Assembly (NCBI GenBank): GCA_020891255.1
Contig: BQFW01000011.1
Span: 1,860,001-1,924,000 of the forward strand
Source: Entomortierella parvispora E1425
Lineage: Eukaryota > Fungi > Mortierellomycota
Length of the DNA stretch: 64,000 bases
Reading direction: 5' to 3'
The translations under genes were made by a program, and so were the position numbers. Positions within the stretch are counted from its first letter, which is position 1. Every line of letters begins with the position of its first letter. Under the pieces are notes generated by a model, which worked only from the letters and a program-made list of their open reading frames with translations, made no database searches and was not told where the DNA came from. Below, piece by piece: positions 26,162 through 32,292 of the stretch.

Positions 26162-28217
26162 CTATGCAACATGAATGCGGTCACGGTCGCCATCTGTCAA
26201 GAACAGGCTCTCCGTGTCCCAACCTTTGCTCTCCATGACCTCGACTAGCCTTGGGACTGTCTCTAATGTTAAACTGTGGGCGGACCTCACAGCATCTAAT
26301 GGCTGCAATGATAATGTCGTTGAGGACAGCAGCTGTCTTGTGGCGCACGCGTGGTAGAATCCTTGCACCACATCCTGGCTTGTCGCCGTCTTGTCAAACC
26401 AGATGACGACCTTTCCCTTGCAAAGACGACTGCCTGTGCCACTACTCGTTCTTTGACTATGGGCCCCAACAGAGTCATCCACCATGATGTAGTATCGCTC
26501 CTTTTGCACAAAATCCCCTTGTCTCAACGCTCGCTCCAGGTTAGCAGCTCCAGCGCCTTGGCTTGAGAATCGACTGATGGCTGGCTCAATATCAATGCCG
26601 ATATTGAAAGGAGATCGGAAGGACGTTACGAAAACCTCGTCGTGGGCTATTTCCTTGGGCGTTGGCACGATCCGCTCCAATTGACTCTTCAATGTCACTT
26701 CCTTGTCCTTTGTTGATGTCTGTAAATCCTTCAAGACTCCGTGAAAGACGGTTTCCGCTCTTGGCACATTGAGTGAGGGTGTTGTGACATAATGACTGGA
26801 TCGGTAGTTGGAGTAAATATTGAAGATTGAGAAGGGCAAAAAAGTCAGGCACATAGGCACCAAAGGCAAGACTGTTGGATCCGCGGAGACATGGTTCATC
26901 ATAGCGGCTATGACCACTCCCAGTCCAGTTCCTACAGACAAACAAGAACAAGGCGTGAGACCGCTGTTTCATTCAAAGATCTCCGAGCTTCATAGAACAA
27001 TAAAATCCCCTTCGTACCAACGAGTCCCGCTGCTGTCGTTTGAGATCCTGACTTTCCAGTGATATCTCCCAGGCTATAGAATAATTGTGTCCTGAATTAG
27101 TACCGGTAGGCTTTCCCAAAAGCAAATGCCACCACCATTGTTACCACATACTTGTCTCTCAAAGCAAAAGTCTTGTTCATCTGCGCCCGCGTGGCAGAGC
27201 TGGCCAGCCATGCCATGTTCTTGCCTGCAACATGGAGATTAAAAAGAAAATGGATCAAAATCACGCCAATTGTGGATCGTCTGCCTCGTTTTTTTTTCAT
27301 CTGCATCATCAGCACATCAATCATAGACGCTGAGAAGCATACCGATGTTGGAGACTGAAGCGATCAGGAGAAACGATCCTGGCCAAAGAGGCGTCAGCAG
27401 CTCCAGTACGTTAGCGCCCTGCATTGCGACCGTTGCCTGGAAACGGAATCGTTTGGGTTCCGAATCAAACTTGTCACTGACAAAAGAGGCGTAGACGACT
27501 CCACCGAGTTGACCTAGTCCGTCTTTGATGATCCAGTTGAGGGCAGCCGCCATCGGGATAGATCCTGCTCCCAAGCCCATTGCGAACAAGAGGGATTGCG
27601 TCGAGATAACTAAAAGCAAGTTGGAAGATGTGGAAGAGATCCGATAAGGAGCTGGTCCTGCTAAAAATGCTCCTCTGTTTCGATCCATTTCCGCTTTTTT
27701 TTGCGATCTCCCATCCCGGATGCTACACACCTGCCGATACCGATCCAGTGACATTATGCACAAACTGCCACTTGGCATACGGCCAGTAGTTGGGAGTTAC
27801 AGATTCGGGAAAGCCCTTGGGAAGAAAGACGGCCAGGGCAGTTTGGGGCGACAAGAGCTGCTCAACAGTCTTTTCGCTGGAATCGGCACTGCCATCGGTA
27901 TCACTCTTGGCTGTCGGTGAGGGTTGGAAGGAAAAGGTGTTGTCGCTTTGGTCTTTAGACATTGTCAGGGTCATCCATTTCGGCAGCCATGTTCCTGATT
28001 TCCGTTGTCGGACCGTGAATGTGTCTGAATGCGAGGATGGCTCTTTCCGTTGAGATGCATCCGAGGCCGGGTCGTCTGTTGTGATGAAGCGGGTGATGAT
28101 GCGAGGATGAAGATGCGATCGGGTCGAGATGACCTGGGTCTGCCGCGACTTGATCAGCCGAGTCCATCGGACCTGAGGCGAGGCTGCGTGGGCAACTCGC
28201 ACCGAGTGGGGCAGCAT
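26162..28217 (-). CDS. RUS1: RUS1 / DUF647 family protein, multi-exon
   Basis: VFLPKGFPESVTPNY, LSTQSLLFAMGLG, AAALNWIIKDGLGQLG, FDSEPKRFRF, SLNVPRAE. Arg/Ser-rich N-terminus resembling a mitochondrial presequence. Confidence 0.9.
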
Positions 28218-30316
28218 CCTGTACAGTGCTCTATCTGTCTGTGCGGTGCAGACAAAAGAACAAAGAGAGTGAAGGAACAAAGGAACAGAAACGCACAAAG
28301 GGACAAGGAAGAAAGGAAAGAAAAGTGGCCGGGACAATGCAGCGGAAGGGAACGAACGATATCGCACGGCGCACCGTCTGAGTCAAAAAGTCAAAAAAGC
28401 GCGTCTGTCTTGCGAGCCTTTTTGGCTCTCGGATCAGGATTGACAGATTGACAGATTGACAGACACAGCCATGCCATGCAGTCCATGCCTGCCTGGGCGG
28501 GCAACATGGTTGTCCTTTAGGGCATTTGCACCATCTCTTTCAGCCATCTGGGCGCCATGGTTCCTTTGTTCGTCCATGTTTCTTACTGTCAATCAACGTC
28601 AACGGTGTGCCTTTATCGTGTGATCTCTGCTCTTCGATCAGGGTGTTTGCCAAAGGACTTCTCCTCAGCCCTAGATCGCTCTTTCAATGCCCAAAGTGAA
28701 GACACTATGATTGACTCTTCAAGAAGGCATGGCAACTAGACAATGGCTATTGCAAGATTTCTTTGATGGGTGAAGCGGCCATGGGATGCGGGGAGGGAAT
28801 AGATATGTGGAGAGCAAGAAAGTATTATCGTCAAGGCAGTCATCGTCACGCCCAATCGCGCTCAAGGACTGTGGGAGAAGGACGATCGTTCGATCTTCAA
28901 GTCTTTTTTTCTCTCCCCTTTTCGCGTGTCTTTCGTCATAGCTACGCTCTCGAACCCCGTAGTGACACCCGCCTACTTACTTTCTAGTCGGAGAGTTCCA
29001 AGATCTCGACGCGCCGTGTGAAAAGCCTACGGAGGATCCTTCGGCATACTGGTCCGTGTTGCTTCCTTCAGACGGATCTGGACTTCCGCAGCCGCCAAGC
29101 AGTGATCCCCGTCCCTGCATCAGAGGACAATCCTGTTTGAGCTCTACGGAGTATGGACTCTAATTGCTATTGTCAGCCTTCCAGAAATACAAGGAGGTAC
29201 GACATGAGTAACTGCAACTGGAGCCCATGAACAATGCACTCAACCTAGACAAGGCCATTGTCTCAATGTGCGCGAGAGCGATCAAAACAGCCGGTGGCCC
29301 CAGTTCATCCACAGAGGAGGAACCAGTTTCGGCCCCTCTCCGTTGCTCGCCCTTCACTCCTCCAGACTTGCCTTTTTTTTTTCTTGGATTTTCTTGCGCG
29401 ACGCCCTCCATAACTTTGTCCCTGACGCATGTTTTTTTTTGTTCTAGGTTGCTGTCGCGCTTGACTCCTGAATACGTGTTGTTTCTTTTTTTTTTTCTCT
29501 CCTGGCTCTCAATATCATAGCAAAGAAAAAAGACGCCTCCTACATTTTTTTTCCCTACTTGTGGAGGCTAATATCGTAGACGGGCTTTTTCCTCATGAGA
29601 AACGTAGTGTAAGCATTGAAACAAGATCGAAACAAGATCCAGGAGTTGCGTTATGAAGAGGTGAGGAGTAGAACAAGGAGATATACTGCAGAGTAGAGAA
29701 GACTTTCCCTTCTCTTTTTTTTCTTTTTGTTGTTTTTACTTCGAGGCGCTCACGGCTCCGCTTTTGCGCCTACTTGGGGTCATGTCTGTCGTCTGTGCGC
29801 TGACGCGACTGCAAATAGAACCCGGAGTGTTGGGCCCTTCGAGGAGCTTGCGATTGGATCAGAGTTCATCCCAATCGACGAAATAAAAAACAGCAGAGGA
29901 CAAACTCAACTCGTTGGTAAGGCCCACCCAGGAGTAGGATCATTCGGGACCCCAAAGAGACTGCAGCTCGACAGTTTCATTAAACTGTCCATGGTTCTTG
30001 AGTGACCAATTCGGCAACAAGGACAAGTTTGCTTGACTCTCTCTTGCTTCTTTCCTCTATAAAACGCAAGAAGTAAGTCCTCTTTTTTTTTTTTTTTTTT
30101 TTTAGGTACTCATCTTCTTGATCATTTTCCATCCTTCATCATCTGCATTCAGCATTTTTGCATAGGTTCCTACTCTCACTCCGCCCTTCCACCTTCCCCA
30201 CCCTCTTATTTTTCCACCCCCTGCACTCTCTCACCCGCACGCATACTCGGTCGCAGACACACACCTCGACCGCGACAGCACCACCATAAGCATCCAATTA
30301 CAACTCCATAGCAACC

Positions 30317-32005
30317 ATGAAGATCTCAGCTCTTATCCTCCTCTCCGCTGCCGCAGCCATTGCCTGTGCCCACGATGGCCCCCAACACAAGGCTCAGCGT
30401 GAAGAACTCTATGCTCGCAACCGATTCGCGAGCGCACTCTCTCAGCCCGAATCGATGGAAAAGCGCGAGATTCCTATTGTTGGAGGCCTCCTGAAAGGCC
30501 TTCCTGTAGTAGGACAATTGACGAAGCGCGAGATTCCTATTGTTGGGGGCCTCCTGAAAGGCCTTCCTGTAGTAGGACAATTGACGAAGCGCGAGATTCC
30601 TATTGTTGGAGGCCTCCTGAAAGGCCTTCCTGTAGTAGGACAATTGACGAAGCGCGAGATTCCTATTGTTGGAGGCCTCCTGAAAGGCCTTCCTGTAGTA
30701 GGACAATTGACGAAACGCGATTCGGAAGGGGAGGAAGGGGAAGGTGAGGCTGAAGACCTTATGAAGCGAAATAACGAAGATGAGGTTGAATGCGAAGAGG
30801 GAGGTGATGACAACGATGACAACGATGACAACCCTCCACACCATGGCGATCATGATGGTGATCACGACGGAAACCGCCCACACCACGGTGGCCATGACGG
30901 CGATCATGATGGACATCACTCACACCATGGAGGTGACCACGACGGCGATCACCCTCACTATGGGGGCGATGGAGATCATTACCCTCACCATGGAGGCGAT
31001 AGAGATCATCGTCCTCATCACCCTCACCATGGAGGCGATAGAGATCATCGTCCTCATCACCCTCACCATGGAGGCGATAGAGATCATCGTCCTCATCACC
31101 CTCACCATGGAGGCGATACAGATCATCGTCCTCATCACCCACATCATGGTGGTGATGGCGATCATCATCCTCACCGCCCACACTACCCTCACCACGGCGA
31201 CCATGGACATGGCCACCACTCTCACGATAACGATAACGATAACAATGATGGTCTTTGCGATTGTGACCGCCAAGGTGGACATCACGGCCATTCTCACCAT
31301 GGTGGCGACCACGGCGTTGGTCATCATCGTGACCATGATGGTGACATCAACATTGACTTGGATCTCGAGGCTATTATCGAGGCAAAGATCAGGGTCATTG
31401 CCAAAGCTTATATCAGCATCGTGGTGGACGCCGTTCTTGACATCAAGGCCGATATCCTGGCCAAGATCCTTCTCAAGCTGAACATTGATGTCAAGGTCCA
31501 CGTTGATCTGGTAGCCAAGATCAAGGGTAAGGATCGATCCTCCTGTTCGACCGCTCTGAAAAAAAAAATTCTATCAAGTGCCTGATCTCTAATTTTTTTT
31601 CCCCCTCTTTCTCTCTCCCTCTCTCTTTTATCAGCCATCGTCAATGCTCGCGTGGATGCGATCGTCAAGGTCTACGTCAACGCCGACATCAAGGCCCGTA
31701 TCGGCGATACCGTGCACGGTCACTGCTCCCACTCTTGCGGCTCAGATGTCGATTCCGGCATCTTGGCAGACATCACGGCGGCGATCAAGATTGACCTTGG
31801 CAAGATCTTGGTGGACCTCGATGCAGATGTCTTGGCCGACATCAGGGTTCGCTTGAACGCTTTGGGACTCAAGGTCAGGGCGGATGTGGACCTCCATCTC
31901 GGATTGGACCTCGGTGCCATCCTGGGTGATCTCCTGGGCGACTGCAGACATGCCCACCCAGCCATCATGGCCGACTTGAAGCTGGCCATCAAAGCCAAGG
32001 TTTAA
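30317..32005 (+). CDS. Secreted Kex2-processed repeat protein (KEP): signal peptide, 4x KR-EIPIVGGLLKGLPVVGQLT, acidic spacer, His/Asp-rich region, aliphatic C-terminal domain (about 526 aa)
   Basis: Signal peptide MKISALILLSAAAAIACA. Exon 1 30317-31526, GT-AG intron 31527-31634, exon 2 31635-32005 in frame. TATA-like TATAAAA near 30058. Confidence 0.9.
30461..30718 (+). repeat. Coding tandem repeat, 4 x 63 bp plus a closing KR
   Basis: Units begin at 30461, 30524, 30587 and 30650 (AAGCGCGAGATTCCTATTGTTGG...). One synonymous GGA/GGG difference, in unit 2. Confidence 0.97.
30983..31150 (+). repeat. Coding tandem repeat, about 4 x 39 bp (GGD[R/T]DHRPHHPHH)
   Basis: Recurring GGAGGCGATAGAGATCATCGTCCTCATCACCCTCACCAT units. 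Confidence 0.9.
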
Positions 32006-32292
32006 AAAAAGAATAATGCACCCCTTCACACATTGCATCTCTTCTCCATATACGACTATATTTACAGCGCAAACTTTTTTTCATTTGAAAAAAAAAAAAA
32101 AAAAAAACAAGTTGATTGCACCCTAAACAGTTCAAATTGGAGAGATGTGGTGTGGGCAGATATGGAGTCGACAGAGAACAAGGGCCAGGGTCAAGAATCA
32201 GATACCAGACGAGATGTTTATTTGAGATCCATGTGAAATATGAAAAATCAATGGTATAGCAAGAACAGCAGGCAGGAACAAGAAGAGGTACT

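Follow-up and report, generated by a model that had tools for sequence, protein, structure and literature searches.

A putative Kex2-processed peptide array in the pro-region of a predicted secreted protein of Entomortierella parvispora

Kex2 cleaves, by consensus, after an Arg at P1 that is preceded by Lys or Arg at P2 and by an aliphatic residue such as Leu at P4; Asp at P3 is disfavoured (Outram et al. 2021, PMC8528282). Kex2-processed repeat proteins (KEPs) have been screened for as proteins with a signal peptide and at least three repeats with KR or RR in between, a long C-terminal fragment being common (Le Marquer et al. 2019, PMC6339444). Mucoromycota KEPs have already been catalogued, with 357 in 38 strains, eight of them in M. 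verticillata (PMC6339444 and Umemura 2020, PMC7329392), and M. elongata was among the species of the 2019 survey (PMC6339444). Set apart from these repeat-peptide precursors are the Kex2-processed pro-domain (K2PP) proteins, whose pro-domains have been proposed to act as folding chaperones (Outram et al. 2021, PMC8528282). Here we describe a gene of the fungus Entomortierella parvispora E1425 that, judged from its sequence, combines the two layouts. The gene lies in a stretch of 64,000 nucleotides (contig BQFW01000011.1 of assembly GCA_020891255.1, positions 1,860,001 to 1,924,000 of the forward strand), referred to below as the window, and all coordinates are those of the window unless stated otherwise.

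The nearest described layout, by analogy, is that of Ustilago maydis Hum3, which the predicted protein resembles and in which Kex2-separated amphipathic repeats are followed by a surface-active C-terminal hydrophobin domain; in U. maydis Rep1, Kex2-released peptides form surface-active fibrils, alongside one large C-terminal fragment (PMC4617103). The window gene would follow the same logic, one precursor giving rise to several small hydrophobic peptides and one larger product. The Hum3 and Rep1 units are, however, 31–55 aa long as against 19 aa here. No sequence relationship was detected in a word-limited search with the N-terminal part, which has no Ustilago protein among its matches, and neither exon, nor any ortholog, has a Pfam match to a hydrophobin domain after the repeats. 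Likewise, there is no Pfam match to the alpha-factor families MF_alpha_N or MF_alpha, and the predicted 19-mer opens E-I-P, with neither Ala nor Pro at position 2 and hence without Ste13 dipeptides. In a comparison of language-model features, residues 1–152 fall closest to the alpha-factor, bombinin and apidaecin multi-peptide precursors at a score of 0.72, which can be taken as a lead only.

The gene is on the forward strand, with two predicted exons (30317–31526 and 31635–32005) and a 526-aa product (Table 1). The reading frame opens at 30317 and runs on past the array for 392 more residues, including those of the spliced second exon, so that the array itself covers residues 49–134 only. On translation the array resolves into four identical 21-aa modules, each consisting of KR followed by the 19-mer EIPIVGGLLKGLPVVGQLT, and is closed by a fifth KR at 30713–30718; the KR pairs start at residues 49, 70, 91, 112 and 133. 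Each 21-aa unit is in turn made up of two related decamers, IPIVGGLLKG and LPVVGQLTKR, of which only the second ends in KR. At the DNA level, Tandem Repeats Finder (TRF) reports a period of 63 with 4.1 copies and 98% matches at 30461–30720, and the units differ by GGA/GGG at 30547, which is synonymous, and by AAA for AAG in the last Lys codon. The 19-mer has a monoisotopic mass of 1902.155 Da, a net charge of 0 and a grand average of hydropathy of +1.07.

In the DNA sequencing run X1, possibly of the very sample from which the window derives, the repeat unitigs have a word depth of 183–249, compared with 70–76 for the flanks, a ratio of 2.4–3.3 that fits three to four copies. Because the repeat unitigs are deeper than the flanks, the multi-copy state is present in the reads and is not an artefact of assembly. 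A second run, X2, is of another sample that carries the same organism label; on window positions 30488–30630 it yields only contigs of 41 and 82 nt, less than 90% alike to the unit and with word depths of 364–470, which suggest that another strain has the array in a diverged, multi-copy form.

Upstream of the array, the predicted signal peptide is cut at ...AIACA/HDG and is followed by a 30-aa pro-piece; both start codon and signal peptide are kept in three orthologs (P0007, P0010 and P0013) in the family alignment. Within the otherwise variable pro-piece, the motif ELYARNRF (30404–30427) is conserved across genera, being found in M. polycephala, Linnemannia elongata, Mortierella sp. GBA30 and Actinomortierella wolfii; its role may be that of a sorting signal, or it may be a peptide product itself. 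No N-x-S/T sequon is present in the protein, and no GPI-type (glycosylphosphatidylinositol) tail was seen on reading it.

All six dibasic sites of the protein fall within the first 151 residues. Five of them have the form L-x-K-R (L-T-K-R in the array) and the first is M-E-K-R, with Asp at P3 in none. Like the KEPs of the published surveys (Le Marquer et al. 2019; Umemura 2020), the protein has a signal peptide, tandem repeats (here four identical modules), KR between them and a long C-terminal fragment. Unlike the usual KEPs, it carries its array as an insert in a pro-region, and the conserved part is a separate domain. In this respect it is closer to the K2PP proteins, in which the N-terminal pro-region lies ahead of the conserved domain and is closed by a conserved L-x-K-R before the midpoint of the protein, here D-L-M-K-R at residues 147–151 of 526. 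At this sixth KR the pro-region is predicted to end and the mature protein to begin. K2PP proteins, however, usually have one pro-domain without repeats, whereas the window protein has six sites and an amplified peptide.

Evidence of constraint on the peptide comes from a close relative, a soil-metagenome contig (Ga0302182_10012658, locus L003) whose protein is 89% identical to the window over exon 2 in a single-protein scan. The contig begins inside the array and contains at least four units of ELPVVGSVLKGLPVVGALT, with the unit form E(L/I)PVVGSVLKGLPVVGALT followed by KR; then come an acidic spacer, a KR and a shorter His-rich region. This is the sole close relative found to carry the array. 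The window and L003 units share 70% nucleotide identity, with 10 synonymous and 5 conservative codon changes per unit (I/L, I/V, G/S, L/V and Q/A), and every KR is unchanged. Because synonymous changes outnumber conservative replacements in this way and all KR pairs are kept, the peptide is, by this sequence comparison, under purifying selection between the two species. The units are, moreover, near-identical within each species, which implies concerted evolution or repeated re-amplification.

Much of what the initial annotation had claimed for this stretch is thus borne out. A signal peptide and short pro-region do precede four identical KR-bounded 19-aa units at 30461–30718, on which TRF, translation and read depth in X1 agree, and each unit does repeat its own motif. 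The architecture of a secreted, Kex2-type repeat precursor is upheld by the L-x-K-R contexts, by the selection on the peptide and by the KR pairs, whose lack of conservation in orthologs would have counted against the claim and which are all kept in the one array-bearing relative. As the identity of the gene, 'polyprotein' is not supported, the array being apparently a young insert in the variable pro-region of a 526-aa protein.

What that protein is becomes clearer from its C-terminal domain (residues 343–526, about 184 aa). An exhaustive phmmer search with exon 2 as query, against 1.84 billion representatives, matched 11 clusters with E-values of 5e-40 to 8e-12 and nothing else. The named members are all 'hypothetical proteins' of Mortierellaceae (M. 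polycephala, Mortierella sp. AM989 and GBA30, L. elongata, A. wolfii and A. ambigua, and Entomortierella chlamydospora), the others being unnamed environmental assemblies. Pfam gave no match above threshold for either exon or for 15 family members, and a word-indexed protein search with residues 338–403 gave no match; with the family alignment the word-indexed search returned three members only, its word filter being saturated. The domain appears from these searches to define a previously undescribed family restricted to Mortierellaceae, and no paralog of it, or of the peptide, was found elsewhere in the window. The window array is another KEP-type array, housed inside this family.

The orthologs are 45–64% identical to the window in the C-terminal domain. 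A gene of the UVB_sens_prot family lies upstream of the ortholog loci in M. polycephala (L001) and GBA30 (L002), as it does in the window, and a phase-1 intron is found at the identical position in M. polycephala (81 nt) and GBA30 (110 nt; both NCBI models) and also in L003; shared synteny and shared intron position make these positional orthologs. The spliced product aligns with them without gaps across the junction (...AKIK/AIVNARVD...), and it is on such comparative evidence that the intron and its splicing are predicted. All orthologs carry dibasic sites, 2–9 of them, in the variable N-terminal part, while the C-terminal domain has almost none. In seven of nine lineages an x-K-R stands just ahead of the acidic/Cys stretch, with AM989 having L-V-T-R and A. 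ambigua P-Y-D-R instead, and a His-rich stretch of variable length lies between the acidic/Cys stretch and the C-terminal domain. The sequence of the pro-region varies among genera. Another relative, L004 (Logan SRR5823778), has a KR-punctuated pro-region that is non-repetitive, and in orthologs at or below 64% identity no more than one or two loose (L/I)P-x-x-G motifs can be read from the alignment in the array region. We read the array, from this distribution, as a probably young, clade-specific amplification of a pro-region module that has been homogenised within species.

The part of the protein beyond the sixth KR has two further peculiarities. The His-rich region (30836–31342) contains 58 His in residues 174–343 (about 170 aa), a 39-nt unit (13 aa) that is repeated 5.1 times at 30976–31173, and a C-x-C motif at residues 314–316, and is plausibly a metal-binding tail. 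It is much shorter in L003 and other orthologs, so that this gene has, besides the array, another recent tandem expansion. In the C-terminal domain, residues 344–427 (84 residues) have an aliphatic residue at every second position, 42 in a row, while the longest alternating run in a shuffled control (300 shuffles, two misses allowed) was 15. The other phase of this segment is 76% polar and the segment contains no Gly or Pro. The alternation is kept in orthologs over 41, 37 and 32 consecutive positions, and the gaps that can be read within the domain in the ortholog alignment are of even length (10, 2 and 2). The family-averaged hydrophobicity spectrum has a power of 32.6 at 180 degrees as against 0.07 at the helical angle of 100 degrees, and also peaks slightly at 90 degrees. 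The autocorrelation of the domain shows periods 2 and 4 only; a search of it for longer internal repeats, for instance solenoid units of about 22 residues, found none.

How this domain folds was approached by modelling. With a 15-row family alignment AlphaFold2 returns four long helices, with a predicted local distance difference test score (pLDDT) of about 80 for the domain and a predicted template-modelling score of 0.56; exon 2 alone gives a pLDDT of 46, which is uninformative. In the model of an ortholog, the N-terminal part equivalent to the acidic/Cys and His-rich region is disordered. The modelled helices would have no hydrophobic face, and both a helical and an amphipathic sheet conformation are considered here; the domain is strongly amphipathic in either case. 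The PDB yielded no match in a profile search, and shape searches with Foldseek (PDB and AlphaFold database clusters) and the ESM Atlas gave none at a template-modelling score of 0.5 or above, only generic helical bundles; Atlas features for exon 2 score 0.59 or less. That the C-terminal domain is poor in dibasic sites could be taken as avoidance of Kex2; we considered this and dropped it, as the alternation itself forbids adjacent basic residues.

From this anatomy, the orthology, the conserved KR pairs and the selection on the peptide, we infer the following course of cleavage, release and function. Once the signal peptide has been removed, a Kex2-type kexin of the late secretory pathway would cut after each of the six Lys-Arg pairs, and a Kex1-type carboxypeptidase would trim the basic residues. 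The products would be the 30-aa pro-peptide with ELYARNRF, four identical neutral, hydrophobic 19-mers, the 15-aa acidic spacer and a mature protein of about 41 kDa comprising the His-rich tail and the amphipathic domain of about 184 aa. The 19-mers and the mature protein would act jointly on the wall or surface of the hypha, as surface-active or repellent-like agents and not as cationic antimicrobials. That kexin and Kex1 processing yields four 19-mers and a mature protein of about 41 kDa, both acting at the hyphal surface, is in our judgement the probable reading, held with moderate confidence.

Several points weigh against it. The four-unit array is missing from all orthologs at or below 64% identity and is thus not an old conserved product. 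By Nei–Gojobori counts for the window and L003, the proportions of nonsynonymous and synonymous differences (pN and pS) are 0.13 and 0.73 for the array and 0.07 and 0.41 for the C-terminal domain, but the 83 codons of the array are 21 codons counted four times and its pS is near saturation. The scarcity of dibasic sites in the C-terminal domain, for its part, follows in some measure from the strict alternation and is not independent evidence.

The same observations give some room to the view that only the pro-domain function is real: the KR-punctuated N-terminal region, array included, would be disposable and removed by Kex2, and the 19-mers would be functionless after release. The region might then chaperone the C-terminal domain intramolecularly or keep it soluble, as would agree with the role proposed for K2PP pro-domains (PMC8528282); the domain would tend to aggregate, as an 84-residue alternation should indeed do. 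It is also the C-terminal domain that is conserved, the pro-region differing among genera, and most orthologs lack the array. On the other hand, the amino acids of the unit are constrained between the window and L003, with 5 conservative as against 10 synonymous changes, and both species have kept at least four copies whereas drift or collapse would be expected of a plain spacer. We consider this explanation unlikely, if the most serious of the alternatives.

Release of the 19-mers for joint action with the mature protein could be taken further, to a two-component surface-coating system specific to Mortierellaceae and formed by the 19-mers and the His-rich protein. Here the 84-residue alternating segment would assemble on the surface of the hypha as an amphipathic sheet or an amyloid-like film. 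We put this forward as a speculative extension and regard it as distinctly doubtful.

Another alternative is that the precursor is not cleaved in the array at all, which would then be a hydrophobic, Pro/Gly-rich (elastin-like) linker in an intact wall or matrix protein, with the KR pairs incidental. Searches with the N-terminal part gave motif-level matches from other fungi and one bacterium that bear on this in both directions. LP(I/V)VG(G/D)L decamer repeats without dibasic sites occur in proteins of Marasmius (P0001), Mycoemilia (P0003) and an actinobacterium (P0006), and the KR of the window array ends only one decamer in two, as an uncleaved linker would allow. Against this, LP(I/V)VG(G/Q/D)L decamers with KR or RR boundaries occur in Microstroma glucosiphilum (P0002), in a Logan protein (P0004) and in an ENA protein (P0005, locus L008). 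In these three uncharacterised proteins the decamer stands in tandem repeats directly upstream of KR or RR, which is followed by an acidic residue; the similarity is confined to the short repeat (E-values of 1e-5 to 1e-4), so that homology is unproven, and the C-terminal parts differ. Moreover, KR and a P4 Leu stand at every unit boundary in both the window and L003 despite 30% nucleotide divergence, dibasic sites mark the N-terminal part across all orthologs, and KR is enriched in the N-terminal part of the window protein (6 observed and 1.8 expected, p=0.0035, four of the six being copies of one duplicated unit). An array that stays intact is to us quite improbable.

The decamer repeat recurs in secreted proteins of three fungal phyla, and its strings were not found in the literature searched; it may represent an unrecognised peptide class or convergent low complexity. 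Nor does the peptide motif of the window appear in the text or supplements of PMC6339444 or PMC7329392, or in the other literature searched. The Microstroma protein is fused to an RlpA-like DPBB domain, and a gene with a DPBB_1/Barwin-type domain lies downstream of the ortholog in Mortierella sp. AM989 (L007, 3995–4208), which may be coincidence; the AM989 ortholog model itself (P0008) has no signal peptide, begins 194 nt away from the end of its contig, and is probably truncated. For P0003 and P0005 we considered whether LPIVG repeats are linked to alternating stretches rich in D/N, and set this aside as a weak lead at most, the alternating runs being no longer than in shuffles.

The core of the 19-mer, IPIVGGLLKGL, is identical at 8 of 11 positions to LPIVGNLLKSL of frog temporin B (LLPIVGNLLKSLL, a string that occurs alongside the name 'temporin B' in 25 papers), as the initial annotation had counted correctly in calling the peptide 'temporin-like'. 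Temporins are about 10–17 residues long and are C-terminally amidated, with a Gly donor ahead of the basic pair. Both peptides are hydrophobic and bounded by KR, at which the 19-mer too is predicted to be released, and a bombinin precursor cluster is among the weak feature neighbours (0.60). The 19-mer differs from temporins, however, in its 19 residues with two Pro and four Gly, in its charge of 0 (temporin B has +1, or +2 if C-terminally amidated), in a helical hydrophobic moment of 0.23 as opposed to 0.50, and in a unit end, Q-L-T-K-R, that offers no Gly as amidation donor. The L003 peptide matches temporin B at 7 of 11 positions, more poorly than the window peptide, and no amphibian protein is among the matches of the N-terminal or C-terminal domain searches. 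The decamer also turns up in unrelated secreted proteins from both fungi and bacteria, which points to a coincidence at the level of the motif. A membrane-lytic host-defence antimicrobial peptide is accordingly the least probable reading, very unlikely in our view. Judged by precursor homology, by length, by the signal for amidation, by charge and by the amphipathicity of the helix, the label does not fit, and a new class of antimicrobial peptide is not supported; on the sequences compared, the resemblance is most likely due to chance or convergence. The annotation's own caveats of zero net charge, of a surfactant or repellent role and of convergence were well placed.

The coordinates of the gene and of its upstream neighbour are collected in Table 1. 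Two homopolymer runs flank the gene, T21 at 30083–30103 (about 215 nt before the start codon) and A20 at 32088–32107 (about 85 nt past the stop), and the read contigs break at both.

Table 1. Predicted features of the precursor gene and its upstream neighbour, in window coordinates
Feature	Position	Strand	Basis
Start codon and signal peptide, residues 1–18, MKISALILLSAAAAIACA	30317–30370	+	n/h/c layout and A-C-A (A-x-A) before the cut, judged by reading
N-terminal pro-peptide, residues 19–48 (30 aa)	30371–30460	+	Family alignment
Array, KR + 4 × (19-aa EIPIVGGLLKGLPVVGQLT + KR)	30461–30718	+	Translation, TRF, read depth, homologous array in L003
Individual 19-mers	30467–30523, 30530–30586, 30593–30649, 30656–30712	+	Translation
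Acidic 15-aa spacer DSEGEEGEGEAEDLM (residues 135–149) and sixth KR (150–151; context D-L-M-K-R)	30719–30769	+	
Acidic/Cys stretch (residues 152–173), then His-rich low-complexity region (174–342)	30770–31342	+	
First part of conserved C-terminal domain, end of exon 1	31343–31526	+	Homology, alternation analysis
Intron (predicted), 108 nt, GT...AG, phase 1	31527–31634	+	Alignment to orthologs, shared intron position
Exon 2, remaining C-terminal domain (conserved H-C-x3-C and D-C cysteines) and stop codon	31635–32005	+	phmmer
UVB_sens_prot (RUS) upstream neighbour, multi-exon	26162–28367	−	Pfam PF04884/PF24160 matches in window reading frames; synteny anchor

KEPs are common and mostly uncharacterised, and to our knowledge none has been studied in Mortierellaceae. 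For this one, a concrete predicted peptide with an exact mass is now available to look for. The gene also provides a case of how precursors of repeat peptides may come about, through a single Kex2-bounded module that is amplified in tandem within the pro-region of an otherwise ordinary processed protein, as is suggested by the contrast between distant orthologs with only loose (L/I)P-x-x-G-like motifs and two close species with at least four homogenised copies. If this is true, the window and L003 would capture a KEP array born from a single-copy pro-domain module. Were the two-component coating also to prove real, it would correspond in function to hydrophobins and repellents, within a lineage in which canonical hydrophobins are patchy. 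The unannotated, lineage-restricted domain, with its unusual alternation beside a His-rich tail, may in the end be more interesting than the peptides themselves.

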